From the NCBI GenBank assembly GCA_001179505.1, contig CDMY01000677.1:124001-188000 (forward strand): a stretch of 64,000 nt of DNA, read 5' to 3'. Shown here in pieces: positions 44,109 through 55,198 of the stretch. This DNA is from Vitrella brassicaformis CCMP3155 (lineage: Eukaryota > Protista > Chromerida). Made by a program: the position numbers and the translations under genes. Numbering within the stretch: position 1 is the stretch's first letter; every line of letters begins with the position of its first letter. The notes beneath the pieces were generated by a model. The model did no database searches and was not told where the DNA came from. It was given only the letters and a program-made list of their open reading frames with translations.

Positions 44109-47100
44109 ATGGGTTCCCTTGTTTTGTCACTGCTCGTCACTCTCCTACACCTACTGAGTGGCACCCATGAACTCACAATCCACCCACCAGCCGTCGTCCA
44201 GAACATCACCGATGCGGCCACGGTGGAGCTGAAGATCACCAACGACGACGATGCCGCTCTCTCTCTGGACGTGCATGTGACCGATATCAAGTACAGCCCC
44301 TTCTTCTGGCCGAAAGACGGTGTCTGGACGGCTGAAGACTGGCGCCGATATTGGCAGACCCGCCATCCGCCGGGCGAGAACCACACTGGGGTGTTCTCAA
44401 ACACGACAGGTGAGGCAAGGCAAGCAACGGGAGAATTGCATGCACTAAAAACATGCATTACATTGCCCTTTCTCTTGCAGAAACATGGCTGCCATCCGGC
44501 GGGCACTTCCACTCATTCGGCTTCCGTGAGCAGCCCGGTGTCTTCTCGGCTCGACACGTCCTTCCTGGTGGCGCAACCGACTTCTTTGACGCGTCAAAAT
44601 CATCGCCATGGAACGAGATTGCCTACAGCCCAGCACTAGCATGGTCGAAGGGCGGGCCCTTCGGCAAACGGGGCGTTCAGACGCTTCCATACTTCGCTGT
44701 ATCGGATGTCGCTCCCTTCTGGGCCAGCTTCTTTGACTGGGGCTGGATTGGGATCGCGAGATGGTCGTGGAGTGATATCTGGGAGTGGGGCTGGGTCGGC
44801 ATTGGCCGAGAAGACTCGCCGATGGTTTGATCCTTCTTATTTTGGCTGGTATGGCATTGAAGCGGACACTCACCCGATCTATCCATTGCATTTGTTTGTC
44901 TGTCTGTGTAGGGGCTGGTTTGGCATAGCCCGCTGGACCCCATGGGACTGGTAATGAGGCGGATCGGCACAAAGAAACAGATTGCATCAGCTGTGGTGCG
45001 CATGTTCTGTGTATACCACACACATCAGGGGCCATGTTGGCACAGGTCGATGGACAGGCGATTGGGGCTGGGTTGGCATCGGACGCTGGACTGGCGATTG
45101 GGGCTGGGTCGGCATCGGCCGTGGTCGGTGGAATCCAGACTGGGGATGGACCGGTTAGCAGGCTAGCAGACATGTGCCTCAGGTGCATCTCGTGTGTCCG
45201 GCCTCTTTCTGCAGGCATTGCTCGTTGGAACCCTGGATGGGTGGGTACACAGAGATAGATAAGACACACGAATAAATCGGTGACAAGACGCTGACCTTGT
45301 TTGCTTTAATCAATCTTTTGCAGGGATGGACGGGCATCGCGCGCTATTGGTAGCAAAGAGACACATCCATAATTGCAGCAGTGACTACTGGTGTGTGTTT
45401 GCGTGCGTGTCGACAGGAATCCGCACTCGTACTTCGGCTGGGGGTGAGAGGTTGATGGCTTTCGATGAAAGCCGCTCCCGTCCTGTTTGAATCGGTTCAG
45501 GTGGGTCGGCACCGGACGATGGAGCTGGGATGATTTCTGGGGATGGGTATGCACACACGGCTGAGAAAAAGGGAAACCAACAGCGAATATCCTTTTGGTG
45601 TGGTGTGTACCGGAAGGGCTGGGTTGGAATCGGGAGGTGGGTGTCGCCAGCGTATTTTGGCTGGTGAGGCACGACATGCCAGCTGCGATTCTTTTGGCTC
45701 CTCACCGCTCTGTCCTTCCCTGCAAAACGGTTCAGGGGCTGGGTTGGTGTCGCGAGATGGCATCCGGATATCTATGGCTGGGGCCACGTCGGCATCGGCC
45801 GATGGAACCCTTATTGGTACCAACGCAAACAAAGAATGCAGCAGCATTCATTGTCTTCCTGTTTCCTGCTCTCAGGGGCTGGGTCGGCATTGCGCGCGGC
45901 TGGTGGACTGGCGACTGGGGATGGGTGGGAATCGGCCGATGGACAGGCGATTGGGGGTGGGTTGGCATTGGACGCTGGACCGGCGATTGGGGCTGGGTCG
46001 GCATCGGCAGGAATAGCGTTCTCTTTCGCCGCCAGAACATCACGGACGATGCAGAACAGGAGGACAGCAAGCAGAAGGAGATAGCGAAGGATCGCCTGAC
46101 AGCCGATAGCGGGATGGGGCGCTTCTCCGTGAGCGACTCCATGATGGAGTACTCGCCCACCGCCAGTACTTGGATGGACCTGATCGACAAGGTCATCCCT
46201 GTGGGATACTTCAGGTGAGCCGACAGGAGGCACATAGAGCAATCGATGTGCATCGTTTAGCAACGGTCATATGTGTCAGCCACAACAACACCTTCTATCC
46301 GTGGGGCGTCTACAAGGGGCCTGATGGCAACTGGCAGCCGTGGGGCTTCTTGCGCTCTTCCGAGGGGAACCTGAGGCCTTGGGGCTTCGACTACCAGAAC
46401 CTGACGAAGCCCTCGGAAGACAACTACGGAGGCACTCGCTTCTGGTCTGTGCACGACGGAGAGGTAGAGCCTATCGGTCTGTTCAAGTAAGCAACGACAA
46501 TGCATATAGAGAGAGAGGGATACTTCTGTCGAACGTCATGTGTGCCCGCTGCTGTTCTCAGGTCGTCCAATTGGCATCCCAATTTCCACGACTGCGCCAT
46601 CGGTAAATTCCCGCATTCTGTCCATCTCTCCAGCTTCGACCTCAGTCTGTTCGAGACAGCCGAGTGGCGAGACAAGTGGGCAGACCTCACTAATCATCGC
46701 CATACGCAACGCTGACACCTTCGTGTTTTGTTCTCGCCAGCCATATCACGCCGAGGGACATCGGAATGACCAGCGAGACTACATGGGAGAGCCTCAAGGG
46801 GTAGGACGCCCTGCAGCAGTGGAACCTGGCCTTCCTCTCCTCACACGACGCGAAGCTTCTCAATAACTCCCACCCTGATGCATTCTGGAAACGACTTTCG
46901 CGAGCATCGTCCAGACAAAAAGGCGGCGCTGGCAGCTGGTTGCTCGCGGATGGCAGCTGTTTGGTTCGCCAATCAGGAAGGTGGGGCTATACCGAGGAAC
47001 AGCGGAGGGAGCTGCTGCTGCAGTCCATCAAGGTCGACGAAGAGCAGAAGTTGCTCGCCATCACATTCGACACGGTAGGGAGAATTTAAGCCTGTGTGTC

Positions 47101-50100
47101 GATCAATGTGTCCACGCCCTTCCGTCTCGATCTGATTTGCAGTCGAGTGCATCGCTGTTCCGTCAGCTGAACGCCACGAGAGGCCGTGCTCTCTTCAATG
47201 AGTTAGTCGACATGGGCTTTTTCGCCACCTCGAGCAATACTGACAAGCAAACAGCCTTAGATCCTGTGTTCCTCGACCTCGACCTCTTCAGCATCGAGCA
47301 GGACATCGTCAACACAGAGCTCTTCACGTATGTGCCACGAGACACAGCCACATGCCATGCCAGTGGGCATCCATCCATGGTCTGTCGTGTCTCTCTCTCT
47401 CTTATCACAGCGCTAATATCTCTCTGATAATGAGCCTTGGTCTATTCCGTCTGAGCAACGAGACCGGCACAACTCCCTGGCTGCCCATGCCACTGCCTCT
47501 CATCTTGACCGCCGACGACCTTGCCAGACTCTCAACCGCACATGAGGGCATCGAGGCCGACATACAATATTCGCTCGATCGGAACCAGACCATCGTCGAG
47601 CCGGAGGAAGAGAAGTGAGACACCAACACTTAGACAAACGAGTCACTCATTGAACACTGAGACAAAGGAGTCACTCATTGATCACATTGCCTCGTCGCTT
47701 TGCTCGTCTTCAGGCCCACAGCCGACAGCACAGCCGTGGCCGAGCAGAAGAAGCGAGTGGCCAGAAAAAGGGCCAAGACGAAGAAACCTGACAGCTGGAG
47801 TGCCACAGCGATGCAGCAGCGGAGCATCCCCCGCCTGTTGGTTGTCTACCACAACGAAAGCGCAGCAGAGGAGGGCCGCAGACGGCTTGCAAGGAAGAAC
47901 AAGGGCAAGAGAGACAAACTCAAGAGACGTGAGGAAAGGATACCTGCCAACCTGCCATTCACACATTGACCTGCCTGCCCTCTCTCCTTCGTGTCTGCAG
48001 TGATCCGACGGCACAGGAAGCTGAAGCGGACTCATGTCGACATCATCGATCTGACCGTCCCCAGTGCGACCGTCAAGAAGGAGCCCCCACCAGGCGCGTC
48101 CAGAGTCCAGAAGACAGAAGAGGACGCCCCAGTCGACATCGATATGGAGGCCATGCAGGACATCCAGAGCGCCATGGACGAGATATGTCGCGGCAAGAGG
48201 GTCGCGGTCTGTGAGGAGGACCAGGTCGTGACGGTCATGGGCACGTTGCCCAACGACCCTCAATTGGGCGAGCAGTGGGGGCTGGCCTCGAGTGGGGTCT
48301 TCGAGGGTTGGAAGATCACAACAGGCACATCGGATAGGCTACCGAAAGGTACAATCAGCAACGATTTATGAAGGTGTGCGTGCTGTAATGCGACCTTTCT
48401 GTCAGGTGCTGTGGTGGCTGTGCTTGACACTGGGATCGACTACAATCATCCCGACCTCAAGGACAATGTGTGGATCAACGAAAAGGAGCTCAACGGCAAA
48501 CCGGGAAAGGATAATGACGGTGAGAAAAGACACAGCTTCGTCCGTCTGCACAGGCAATGAGCCTGTTGGCTTTTGTCTCCTCCAGACAACGGCTATGTGG
48601 ATGACATCTACGGCTATGACTTCCGCAACGACGACGGCGACCCCATGGACGACGCAGGACATGGCACACACGGTGGGCAAGACATGAGACATGACATTTC
48701 ACTGCTTGCACTCTCTGATCCGGCCCCACTTTGTGCAGTGAGTGGTATCATCGGTGCGAGGGGGAACAACAACAGGGGCGTCACGGGCGTCGCGTGGAAG
48801 GCACAAATCATGGCATTGAAGTTCTTGGCAGCCGACGGAAGCGGTGAGAAAATTTACATGGACAATCAACATGTTGGTTCTCTTATTCATCGATTGCTCA
48901 TTTTCATTCAGGTCTTTTGTCCGATGCGATCGAGGCGCTTGAGTATGCGGTGAACAACGGCGCCCAAGTGACGAGCAACTCATGGGGAGGCGTCCGCTTC
49001 TCCTCAGCTCTCTACTCGGCCGTCGTGGCCAACATGAAGGAGAACCTCCTCTTCCTCTGTGCAGCAGGAAATGTCGGTGTGGACAGCGATATTGTTCCTG
49101 ACTTCCCTGCAACCTTTGGATTGCCGTCCATGCTGGCCATCACAACACACAACGAAGAGGGCAGGCTGCCTCGTTGGGCATCGTACGGCAATGACACGAT
49201 CCACCTTGCCGCTCCCGGTACCAACGTCCTGTCGACCGTTCCGAGCTTCTTCAATGACTCGTGAGAAGGAAAAGACACAGCCTGTGGTGGACATGTGAGT
49301 CTTTGTGTGCATCTGCTTGCCTCTGGCTCAGGTACATTGCCGCCAATGGGTCGTCGATGGCCGTCCCCCATGTCGCTGGCGCAGTCGCCCTCATGCTCGC
49401 CGCCAACCCTGATCTCAGCTGGGCCCAGCAGCGGCAAGCGCTGCTCGAAGGGGGCACCGAGATGCACGAGGACGACGCACAGCTGACCATCACGGGCAGG
49501 CGGCTCAACGTGAGCAGGTCGCTGCAGCTGGCTCAGGGGATGAAGGTCCTGACGTATCCAGCCACATTGAGTGTGCCGGCGAACCAGACGGTCAACCTTA
49601 CTATTGGCATCAACACATCATCCGCAGGGCAATACGGGTACGTACGGACGAGCCGCGCAAACGCAGATGGAAGAACAACAATGCCTTCCTGTCTCTTTCA
49701 GGGCCACCGTGTCTATAGCGAGCAACAGCAGCATCCTCTCCCTCTCCCCCTCTCTTCGCGTCACAGCTCTCAGCAGCCCATCTATCGACCCGCCATTGCC
49801 GCAGACATTCCATCTTGGCACCAGTGCCCTCCACGTCCCCGGAAACACCATCCATCTGCCGCTCACCAACAACGGCTCAGGCGTGCTTGCTGTGGAGGTG
49901 GTGTCGATTGAGGGCGAAGGCGCGAAGGATTTTGAGGTGCTGCCACCCGCTGGGATGGTCATGACAGTGACGGCCGGACATACCTCGCATAATCTCAAGG
50001 TGATTTCGCCTTTCCAGCGAGTCGTGAATGAAACCTGAATTACCCTTGTCTCTTGGCTTTTGCAGATGCGCTGCATTCCCACGCAGAGCGGCACGCAATC

Positions 50101-51707
50101 CGCCACACTGCATCTGCTCACCAACGAGGCGTCAACTATCGGCTCTGATCTCAAGACCGCGAGAAACGTCACCCTCACATGTGAAGGTGCTACTTACGGC
50201 GTGTCGCCACCCATCATTCGCCACCGACTCCTTCCTAACGCCGCAAACACACACAAAATCAGAGTGAGTGAAAGAACCAGGTCATTCCGTCTTTTCTGAG
50301 ACACATTAGTCTGTCCGTGGGTGGCTGCAGATCATGAACGGGGACCAGGACAGCCCCCTCCAGTATCATGGACAGCTCATCATGGACGACGATACGTCCC
50401 TGATCGCAGACTATACCGTCACACACGGCGACTTTTTCTGGTTCCCATCGGTCGAGAGGGACGACACCAACCTGACATTTGACGGCGCAAGGGAAGCCGT
50501 CGTGGCCCTGCCATTCGCCTTCCCCTTCTACGGCAACACATATGAGACCATCAGGGTCTCTCGCGACGGAGCCATCATGCTCGGCACTGACGGAGTGATC
50601 GCTGGCTATGCCTCCCGTAAGCTGGGCCATAAGAACGACAAGAAGAGTGCCGTGTACGTCCACAAGTCCCCGCACGACGTGACGATCGAGTTCAGCCACT
50701 TTCGTTTCGCCAGAAAGGGCCGTATCACGTTCCGTATCGTCATTGAGGAAAGTGGCACGATCCACCTGCTGTTTGACGACATCCGCAACATCAGCGAGGT
50801 GGCCTTCGATTCAAGCAGCGACAAGCGCGTCAAGATGGGCATCAAGGGCGGCACCACACGCAAATACCTGACAGTGGCCGAGCAGTATCCAACGAAGCAT
50901 TCGGCGGTGCACTTCAAGCCGAGACGAAACAGCTGGATCAGCGTCCAGGGCACGCCATTTGGGTCGATTCCTCCCAGCAGCCAGACGGAGGTCGAAATCC
51001 ACGTGACTCATGTGGCGAGACAGTTCGATCCATCCGAAGGTCCGCGAGACACACCTTCAGGAGCGAATGCGCAGACTGTCGTGTATGTCTTCTCAGTGTG
51101 CCCGAGGAATGCCTCCGTGCAGTGCGACATGGGCGGCAGCGGAGCCTTCTACGTTAAGACCAACGACTCGTCCACCAGAGTGCCGGTCGAGTTCAGTCCA
51201 TTGCTGCCGCTCCCTGACCGCAAACATGACTGCGACGGCCCCAGCCCGCCCGAAGGTGACGAGAATGACAATGGAGGCGAAGCGAGCAAGGAGGGCACGA
51301 TCATTCGTGCGTCGCCGCTGCTGCAATTCGACAGGCAAGAGGGGCGGCTTCTCTGATATCTATGCAGTGTTGAATTTGTGGTATGCGTCTTTGACCCGCA
51401 GGTATCCCGGTCGAGCGCTCTCGGGACATAATGACTTCCCCGTATTGCGGGCCCGAATGCTGTCAAGTGTGCTCGCACCTTTCTTGAACACCCCACGTGC
51501 AAGTCGTTTGATTACGAGCTGCTGACGACCAAGTGCAAGATGTCCAAGACAACGAAAGACCGCCATCCAGATGCCTTCATCAAACAGAAGCACGGGCAAG
51601 CACGGGCATGCCCACGAATATGCTTCTGGACTGGAAGATACACATTTGTGTTGTTCCTGCTCAGGTTTGTGGACTACTATCAACGGATTCCAGATGTCCG
51701 TCGATGA
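44109..51707 (+). CDS. Large secreted subtilase (peptidase S8) gene: signal peptide, Trp/Gly-rich repeat region, I9-like prodomain, S8 catalytic domain, Ig-like domains, C-terminal PAN/apple domain; carries apparent frameshift and nonsense lesions
   Basis: Catalytic triad: VAVLDTGID (Asp 48426), DDAGHGTHVSGIIGA (His 48660), NGSSMAVPHVAG (Ser 49354). Also SNSWGG, AAGN, PNDPQLGEQWGL. PAN: FDRYPGRALSGHND...CKSFDY...C...VDYYQR. More than 25 exons joinable in phase except at about 44810, 46802 and 51440. Confidence 0.85.
44737..46011 (+). repeat. Coding tandem repeat: 16 units of W-G-[W/H]-x-G-[I/V/T]-[G/A]-R-W spread over 10 exons
   Basis: Phase-compatible exons 44912-44950, 45029-45153, 45215-45240, 45324-45349, 45417-45443, 45501-45546, 45617-45663, 45736-45816, 45876-46214. 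Units differ mainly at synonymous positions. Confidence 0.9.
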
Positions 51708-52094: not shown

Positions 52095-55000
52095 ATGCAC
52101 AGGAGGATTTGGAGATGGGCGTCCTGCACCATCCTGTTGGCCCTCCAAGTGACAGCCCAACACGACGCGCAGAGGACGTCGACTCGGGGAGCCCTGCCCG
52201 CCCCAGACACGGACACCAACCCGCCGCCGCTGGCTCCCTTCGGCTATGTCTACCCCCGCCCCTATTCAGACACCATCTCACCCCTCGCCAGCATCATCAT
52301 TCGGCCACCTGCAGCCGAAATCCGGGGCGCCCAGAAGATCATCAACGCCATCAAGAGGGCTGGCAAACACGTGGCAAGGAAGATACGAGTAGAGGGGTCG
52401 GAGAGCGGCAGGCACAAGGGAGTGGCGCACGTGTCGAATGACGCGATGACGGTCGTGTTCAAGCCGCATCGGCCCTTCGCGCTGGGGGAGAACGTCACGG
52501 TGACCATCGAGCCAGGCATGACCTACACTAAGATGGCCATCCCTCACCAGCCCGACACAGCAGAGGACACAGCTGATGACGAGGAGCCGTCGCCGACCGA
52601 TGTGGAATTGCTGGCTCACGCAACCGAGTTGGGCGAGCAGTCGCTGACACTGGGGGGCTATCAGTGGGCATTCACCATTGCAGACGGCGTGCACTTCGAC
52701 TCGCAGCAACGCGTCTTCCGCCTCGCGAGGCCACCGATGGCCGGCAAGGAGCTCAGCAACGGCGAGCACGATGGCAGCAATTGGAACGACACGCGCATCA
52801 TCCAGGCAGCCACCGATCCGGTGTTCGGCGCCCTTTTCGACGATGACGAGACCTTCGCAGAGATGCTCAAGACCTTCAACAACAATGAGACCGACAACCC
52901 TCTTATCGACGACACTGTACTCGATGACGATGAAGATGAAGACGAAGACAAAGATGAGGTCATCGACGAAGACAAAGACGAGGATATCGTCGACGATATC
53001 GCAGCAGACGACGATCCTCACCTGCACGACTGGGAGAAGGACCTCAGCGAGCCGACTGAGAGCGACACCGACGACTGGCATGTGCTCCACCCCAGCCTAG
53101 CTGACGAGTATGAAACACTCGGCAAGAAGGGAGAGATGCGAAAGAAGCGGGGACCGACGGTTTCGTACGCGACTTTGGAGGAGGACTTCCCCCACATCAA
53201 TGTGAAGAAGGGCAGCGGCAAGACGGCCGACGGGCTGATCTTCACCGAGTACCTGAGGCACCCTGCGGAGAGCGTGCACAACTACATCCTGATTGTGACC
53301 GATGGGGGAGACGTCGTGTGGTGGGTGGGCGGGCGGGGCACGCACACTTGACCACACACGATTTCGCATGTGTGTGTGGTGTGTGTGTGTGTGTGTGTGT
53401 GAGGTATGAGAGATGCGATTCGAGCAACCGGTTCTGGAATGGCTGGACGGTGAGAGACTTCAAAATGCACGGTGGGTGAGAGGCGAGAGCCCCATATGCT
53501 CTTTCTGCTCTGCCTGTGTGCATTCCGTTTGTGTGTCATCAGAGAACGGGGAGCTCACATACCACGACCGGTGGCTCAACGGTTGGATCCACCTCAACAG
53601 CAAATATCAGAAGATCGGCAACGGCATCATCCGCCCAAAGATGGGGTACTCGAGCGACGGCCACTGCATCACCATACGGAAAGACGGCCATCGGCTGATG
53701 CTGCTCAACGACTTCCGCGTCAAGGACATGGAACCCCAGTATGGCGGCTGGCGGAAGGCGCAGGTGCACGGCTTCGCGGTCCAGGAGCAGGACGTGAACG
53801 GGCACGTGACTTTCCAGTGGTCGTCGTGGGATCACATGCCCAAGCAGTTCAGCGAGTCCGTGAGGAACATCAAGGACGCGCTGGTCGACCACCTGCACCC
53901 CAACTCTGGTGAGAGTCAGACCCACAAACACAGCCCATACAGATGCATCGCATCCATGTCTGTGTGTGTGCCCGGGTGACTGCGTGTGTGCAGTGACGTA
54001 CACGCCTGGTGGTGATATATTGGTGTCGATGAGGCACATGAACCAGATCATCGAGATCAGCAGACACGACGGGCACATCAATTGGCGCTTCGGCGGTGAG
54101 CCAGAGACAGACACAGACACAGACACATCAACGCTTCCACCTTGACACTCCATGTGCGTCCCCAGGCAACGGCGGCGACTTCAAGATCGCCCCGCAGCAT
54201 CGCTTCTCGCACCAGCACGACGCCGTGCTGCGGAAGGGCGGCAAGCTGTCGTTCTTCGACAACGGCACCCTGCTGCACAGAGACCCCCTCTACTCCGCTG
54301 GCCGGCAATTCCGCATCGACCCAAAAGCCAAGTCGGCCAAACAGACGTGGGCCGTCAAGGGGCCGTTCGGCAACGCTATGGGCGGCATGCAGGCACGCGC
54401 ACACATGCTTAGAGAGACAGGGGCCCATCTGCAGTGCAGATGGGTCGCTGTGTCTGTGTCTGTGTCTGTGCGTGGTTGTCCAGAACCTGCCCGGCGGCCG
54501 GAAGGCCATAACATGGGCAGGGGTGGAGTCGGAGAACTCCAACCCGCTGTACACGGAGTTCTCCCACGAGAAGGAGAAGCTGGTCGAGCTCACCTTCGCC
54601 AACGACGGCAACCTGGTCTTCAAATCCAAGAAATTCGACGGCTGGAAAGGAACAGGCGTCCGCCGCCCCAAGCTGATCGTCAGGAAAGAAGGTGGGCCGG
54701 GCCGGGATCCACACACACAGCCATCCACACACACACACACAGCCATCCACACGTATGACGGATGCCTGATGTGGTATTGGTGCTGGTGCAGACCACCACT
54801 GGGTGATGCACTATTCCTGGAACGGCGCGACCAACATCCACAAGTGGGAGGTGTATGCCGGCAAGGCCGGCCCCAAGCACCTCGTCCACACCCACAAGCA
54901 CCAGCGGTTCGAATCCTTCCTGATCATCCCCAAGAATGCCGCCTGGCGGCCCAAGAAACGCAAGTGCGTCAAGCTCAAGGTGGTGCCCATCGACAAGGAC

Positions 55001-55198
55001 GGCAACGCCCTGACGGCCAGCGACACGGTGGAGAAGGGCCCCTGCGGTGACAATGACAAGAAAGAGCAGCAGCAGGACGAGCCCTCTTTTGAGAGCAAAG
55101 GTGGCGGGGACGACGACGAGAGGAAAAAGAGGCGGAAACGGGAGAAAAGAAAGAAAAAGAAACGGCGGGAAAAGAAGACACGATCGGATGATGGGTGA
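52095..55198 (+). CDS. Secreted arylsulfotransferase (ASST family) with an N-terminal Ig-like domain and acidic linker
   Basis: Signal peptide RWASCTILLALQVTAQ; Ig-like TVVFKPHRPFALGENVTVTIEPG; ASST motifs DGHC, FQWSSWDH, DHLHPNSV, ILVSMRHMNQIIEI, INWRFGG, FSHQHDA, LSFFDNG, GGMQNLPGG, YSWNGAT. Confidence 0.85.

Follow-up and report, generated by a model that had tools for sequence, protein, structure and literature searches.

A probably disabled member of a Vitrella brassicaformis gene family that joins a Trp/Gly/Arg repeat array to a subtilase

A locus in the genome of Vitrella brassicaformis CCMP3155 raises the question of whether a Trp-rich repeat and a subtilase are made there as one secreted protein, and what such a protein could do. 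The locus lies on the forward (+) strand of a 64,000-nt stretch of contig CDMY01000677.1, which we call the window and to which all coordinates refer unless another locus is named. The initial annotation described a 16-unit repeat of the form W-G-[WH]-x-G-[IVT]-[GA]-R, and this repeat was found as claimed. After GT-AG splicing, exons 2 to 11 encode 16 Trp/Gly cores at 44738-46011, and each unit ends in one Arg. In the unspliced DNA, 14 core matches are present in 44480-46214 and none in the remaining window; 300 shuffles gave a mean of 0.01. The spacing of Arg in the array is very regular (CV 0.26-0.29 versus about 0.9 at random). Units are 8 to 17 residues long, and the terminal Arg is invariant. 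The array is almost devoid of Lys (0-1 Lys), the residue following Arg is mostly Trp, and there are about three Trp per unit.

An identical 12-mer peptide occurs in five of the units. At least 14 base changes separate their coding sequences, all of them synonymous and none nonsynonymous, which indicates that selection acted on the peptide, as had been proposed from the codon use. The array units of the window copy were thus once under purifying selection. The eight consecutive GT-AG micro-exons described earlier (exons 3-10; 39, 125, 26, 26, 27, 46, 47, and 81 nt) also held up when phase was checked, and the chain is in phase. The proposed layout of one exon per unit proved inaccurate, since introns interrupt 8 of the 16 cores. 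Of the eight small exons, only three (39, 27, and 81 nt) are phase-symmetric. Exons therefore cannot be skipped freely, and the suggested combinatorial skipping is largely excluded.

Exon 1 (44109-44409) contains the ATG, a signal peptide, the first half of an Ig-like sandwich, and the start of a Trp-rich N domain. The signal peptide was judged by eye from a hydrophobic N-terminus that is conserved in the paralogs described below. Exon 2 (44481-44848) carries the remaining N domain, units 1-2, a 13-nt insertion, and the start of unit 3. The array continues through exons 3-6 (44912-44950, 45029-45153, 45215-45240, and 45324-45349) and exons 7-11 (45417-45443, 45501-45546, 45617-45663, 45736-45816, and 45876-46214). 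It is followed by a linker and two middle domains of no known family (46012-47614; exons 46280-46486, 46562-46675, 46741-47074, 47143-47327, and 47411-47614), which are 62% identical to a paralog. An I9-like prodomain (47829-48248) precedes an S8A subtilase domain similar to deseasin MCP-01 and SUB1 (48249-49540, end approximate). The C-terminal region (49541-51334) was weakly assigned to the other half of the split Ig, another Ig-like domain, and an Ig with an inserted domain; we take these Ig modules to be bacterial-type. A PAN/apple domain (51402-51707; exons 51402-51595 and 51665-51707) follows.

In a comparison with 118 bacterial proteins, N-terminal residues 21-66 and the residues right after the S8 domain could be aligned end-to-end with individual Ig-like domains (iE 0.002-0.003). 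This weakly suggests that the array, the middle domains, and the protease were all inserted into one split Ig fold and would hence form one chain by design.

The public annotation halves the locus. A 289-aa gene (44109-45275) is out of frame beyond unit 2, and a second gene, CEM29633.1 (1492 aa), has its start placed partway through the array, at 45802. The public record of the CEM29633.1 locus matches the window exactly over 16,009 nt. Both models are wrong. A secreted-looking arylsulfotransferase (PF05935/PF14269) is encoded downstream at 52095-55198. A link between it and the array gene is unsupported: no such gene lies within 6-8 kb of the intact paralogs, and an arylsulfotransferase near a dead family copy at L005 has no similarity to the window neighbor.

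The initial annotation had followed one frame from the signal peptide across all 16 units into the S8 domain, but this frame is broken. Codon-level comparison of the assembly sequence with two intact paralogs revealed three lesions. The first is a 13-nt insertion (44810-44822) that separates the final Arg codon of unit 2 from a Trp codon; in both intact paralogs these two codons are adjacent. The insertion causes a frameshift that ends at a TGA (44828-44830) and yields a 216-aa product, and only 2 of the 16 units are left in frame with the signal peptide. A hidden intron was rejected as an explanation, since no GT-AG pair of usable length is present. The second lesion is an in-frame TAG (46802-46804) in coding sequence that is conserved in the paralogs. 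It adjoins a small in-frame deletion, and both of its flanks are clearly homologous to paralog coding sequence. The third lesion, a 1-nt deletion at about 51447, breaks the frame of the PAN exon. In addition, a PAN Cys is lost in the window copy (TTT at 51480-51482).

Within 44805-44822, the last 5 nt of the 13-nt insertion directly repeat the bases in front of it (GCCGA), and the insertion also contains a 4-bp hairpin. In this it resembles insertions of the templated or footprint type.

The intact paralogs, CEL93642.1 (2007 aa) and CEM17812.1 (2011 aa), are recorded in the database as 'subtilisin' and unnamed product. Both are single ORFs on 34-36 exons, encoding in order a signal peptide, the N domain, about 30-31 units, the middle domains, the prodomain, the S8 domain, Ig-type modules, and PAN. 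Since array and S8 domain share one ORF in both, the fusion is real for the family. The claimed precursor-plus-protease fusion therefore stands for the family and probably does not apply to the window locus today, given its three lesions. Window copy and paralog have 20 of 28 intron positions in common, and the order of the first 13 or so units is the same. The paralogs also carry a second unit type, SPGIQR, which is absent from the window copy. Five RR(x)L linkers separate blocks in the intact paralogs; the window copy keeps one, in the prodomain.

Between the intact paralogs, dN/dS of the array is 0.20, indicating purifying selection. Within the family, both the order and the sequence of individual units are conserved between paralogs at a dS of about 1.9. 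Between the window copy and a paralog, dN/dS is 0.14-0.42 at a dS of 1.0-1.9. This old paralog (dS about 1.2-1.9) kept the unit order, the terminal Arg, and an Asp at position 166 of the protease, so these features were long selected together. The paralog cluster also contains an MMETSP transcript ORF (P0005, 1495 aa), which runs from the last units through the S8 domain to PAN. Parts of it match CEL93642.1 and other parts CEM17812.1, and its frame is off at about residues 115-160; the ORF may represent an allele of another strain or a chimeric assembly.

The family also has a fourth copy, at L005:9869-13781. Its exons are 85-99% identical to those of CEL93642.1; it has many indels and lost splice sites and ends before the S8 domain. 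It is annotated as several short genes and is plainly dead.

We consider it likely that the window locus is a recently disabled paralog in this four-copy family. With a length of 0.30, its S8 branch is about three times as long as the paralog branches (0.08-0.12), and a relative-rate comparison gave it more derived changes (25 versus 11; chi2 5.4). A weaker argument is that no transcript-derived protein of the window copy was found among the MMETSP matches, whereas the paralog cluster has its one ORF. Judged from these sequences, the window copy probably no longer makes a full array-protease protein. The simplest reading would be an old functional paralog that died recently. Its identical units have no nonsynonymous changes in about 140 sites, from which we infer that the time since loss corresponds to at most about 2% divergence.

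The same undecayed units would also be expected of a locus that still works, as would the intact triad, the intact strong splice sites, and a GC3 of 0.705 (introns, 0.50). The lesions would then be assembly errors, a strain-specific allele, or bypassed by cryptic splicing that yields a 14- to 15-unit array-S8 protein without PAN. In-frame routes for this exist, from a donor at 44764 or 44785 to exon 3 and from a donor at 46801 to 46957, and CEM29633.1 dodges the TAG by the second route, as a 156-nt intron (46801-46956). However, the lesion-1 bypass donors score 2.0-2.2, against 7.5 for the strong real donor and 4.1 for the 10th percentile of real donors, and other bypasses of lesion 1 need introns longer than any seen. 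The acceptor of the 156-nt intron is weak, ranking 7th lowest among 96 real acceptors. The skipped sequence is homologous to paralog coding sequence, and its GC content (0.59) exceeds the maximum of the gene's real introns (0.57). Assembly errors are countered by the three rounds of base correction that the Vitrella assembly received (PMC4501334). We therefore regard a functional window locus as unlikely and retain the recently disabled paralog as our reading.

What the intact members do depends on the protease. The claimed S8 domain with an intact Asp-His-Ser triad was confirmed in the window copy: the Pfam Peptidase_S8 match has an E value of 6.7e-53 (180 bits; cut-off, 21.8), and Asp (48426-48428), His (48660-48662), Ser (49354-49356), and the oxyanion Asn (49070-49072) are all present. 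As for the claimed I9-like prodomain, its C-terminal 45-60 or so residues match a bacterial S8 prodomain profile, but Pfam calls no I9. The nearest relatives of the S8 domain are bacterial, and in the tree all Vitrella copies group in a single clade with a long stem. The kexin/proprotein convertase (S8B) class was rejected on three counts: Pfam detected no P domain, position 62 is Ala rather than an acidic S2 residue, and among solved structures MCP-01 and SUB1 come closest.

All S8-bearing Vitrella copies have Asp at the position of subtilisin residue 166 (49100-49102 in the window copy), located before a conserved [YF]-P. It corresponds to Gly166 of subtilisin BPN', which forms the floor of the S1 pocket, and the G166D substitution moves that enzyme toward basic P1 residues (PMC3378952). 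Asp166 in the Vitrella S8 domains would thus fit cutting after Arg. In contrast, Asp166 was found in 0 of 163 bacterial S8 domains, and the array in 0 of 118 bacterial S8 relatives. In other respects the Vitrella proteins resemble MCP-01, the Plasmodium SUB1-type S8A enzymes, and multidomain bacterial S8-Ig proteins, namely in the catalytic domain, the end of the prodomain, and the Ig-like C-terminal modules.

These features suggest a mechanism for the family. Intact members would encode one secreted polyprotein, which would be opened at the RR(x)L linkers in or after the secretory pathway. The S8 domain would then mature, and its S1 pocket, floored by Asp166, would cut after each single Arg of the array. 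The predicted products are many Trp-rich peptides of 8-17 residues, mostly starting with Trp. Their role would probably be in extracellular material (wall, adhesion, or self-assembly) rather than as cationic antibiotics, a preference that we base on the analogy with Eimeria GAM56. Three observations count against self-cleavage: the alignment places no Arg at the prodomain/catalytic junction, the usual maturation site; P4 of the putative cleavage sites is Gly; and the window S8 domain has Val, not Glu, at position 156. From the sequences, we give about even chances to the release of Trp-rich peptides by the S8 domain through cutting after single Arg residues. The combination of a dead paralog at the window locus with this mechanism in the family is the best overall explanation, and we lean toward it slightly.

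A less probable alternative is that the array of the family stays uncut and forms a structural Trp/Gly/Arg module, self-assembling or binding to wall or surface, that tethers the protease. Arg would then serve cation-pi or register roles. The Trp/Gly content suits assembly, introns fall inside units, and the conservation of unit order and sequence between paralogs at a dS of about 1.9 is what such a module would lead one to expect. It accounts less well for units that range from 8 to 17 residues in length yet always end in Arg and exclude Lys, or for the acquisition of Asp166 by the fused enzyme. No confident fold was predicted either: AlphaFold models of the paralog array (pLDDT 28) and middle domains (pLDDT 32) were unusable, and fold searches with predicted models gave meaningless scores (TM at most 0.24).

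The array might also be cut in trans by another protease, with the S8 domain acting on unrelated Arg/Lys substrates. The enzyme's own maturation site, lacking Arg, would agree with this. Yet array and Asp166 go together in all copies that have an S8 domain, and the truncated dead copy was the only array found to lack one; we therefore rate cleavage in trans as improbable. Least credible, and in our judgment very improbable, is a strong form of the initial proposal, in which the array would release amidated, membrane-active antimicrobial peptides. The richness in Trp and the Gly-Arg ends of 10 of the 16 window units speak for it, but the Gly of this presumed amidation signal is not conserved: each intact paralog has it in only 3 of its 31 units. 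No unit in any copy exceeds a net side-chain charge of +1, and 11 of the 16 window units are at 0 or -1. Amidated cationic peptides are therefore unlikely, and the case for membrane activity is weak.

The proposed release of peptides after single Arg residues can be compared with known systems. Like the fungal KEX2-processed repeat proteins (KEPs) and dikaritin precursors (PMC9769878), the family has a putative signal peptide, many similar short cores, basic punctuation, and, as proposed here, processing by an S8-family enzyme. KEPs are short proteins with dibasic sites that are cut in trans by Golgi kexin (PMC9769878), whereas the Vitrella proteins have monobasic sites and a bacterial-type S8A domain in the same chain of about 2000 aa. 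Repeated cores are present in the array, and dibasic KR, RR, KK, or RK between them are absent, a single Arg taking their place. BURP cyclases and borosins (PMC10107690) are similar in that cores, often several and aromatic, are fused in cis to an enzyme. There the fused enzyme is an autocatalytic Cu-dependent cyclase or a methyltransferase (PMC10107690); in Vitrella it is a protease, with no recognizable tailoring enzyme among the assigned domains, and Pfam detected no BURP or methyltransferase domain.

The closest parallel in a related lineage is provided by Eimeria GAM56 and GAM82, aromatic-rich oocyst-wall precursors thought to be cut by subtilisins into wall peptides (PMC3770453). Processing of GAM56 is blocked by serine-protease inhibitors and was attributed to gametocyte subtilisins (PMC3770453). 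These precursors differ in being Tyr-rich rather than Trp-rich and in having the protease in trans, and the likeness is one without shown sequence similarity.

The repeat had not been recognized from any known family, and this agrees with our searches, in which the array was found only in Vitrella copies; neither it nor a middle domain was detected outside Vitrella in any collection searched. A phmmer search with exon 11 against 1.84 billion representatives returned only the sequence itself and an unrelated GTGPWGF repeat. Word searches with the array and the middle domains, within length limits, found only the Vitrella copies. The middle-domain alignment gave no match in metagenomes or bacterial genomes, and neither did the N-terminal/array alignment in viruses, in DNA collections that hold few eukaryotes and by searches limited in length and sensitivity. 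The ESM Atlas gave no usable match. A DNA pattern for one unit matched once in each of 51 loci. Translation of 44 of these showed isolated units, almost always in short frames.

The literature searched contained no eukaryotic precursor with several cores that is joined to a convertase-like S8 protease of its own, and the architecture of the family appears to be undescribed. If the proposed mechanism is true, a free-living relative of the apicomplexans would offer a simple testable model for the origin of aromatic-rich wall or surface precursors and their subtilisins (SUB1-type, Eimeria GAM56). A more far-reaching reading is possible but doubtful. The family would be a self-contained peptide factory new to alveolates, made of a bacterial-type subtilase retuned to Arg and its own library of Trp-rich peptides, which the orphan middle domains may modify. 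The window copy would be, or until very recently have been, a second, long-diverged version with a different peptide set, and it may still be expressed by cryptic splicing. As a probably dead paralog, the window locus is mainly useful as an evolutionary control for the family and for correcting the two public gene models; the intact paralogs, not the window copy, suit bench work.

Three further features of the gene were observed. The first middle domain (46280-46486 and the end of exon 11), for which no family match was found, contains five spaced P-[WI/V]-G-[FVLY] motifs that are conserved in all copies and possibly form a beta-hairpin repeat. The PAN exon is flanked by GC-AG introns (51335 and 51596), and the paralogs have GC donors at other introns too. 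Finally, a block within the array is duplicated (44768-44933 versus 45520-45757, involving the 46/47-nt exon pair); the duplication is old and predates the divergence of the window copy from the paralogs.
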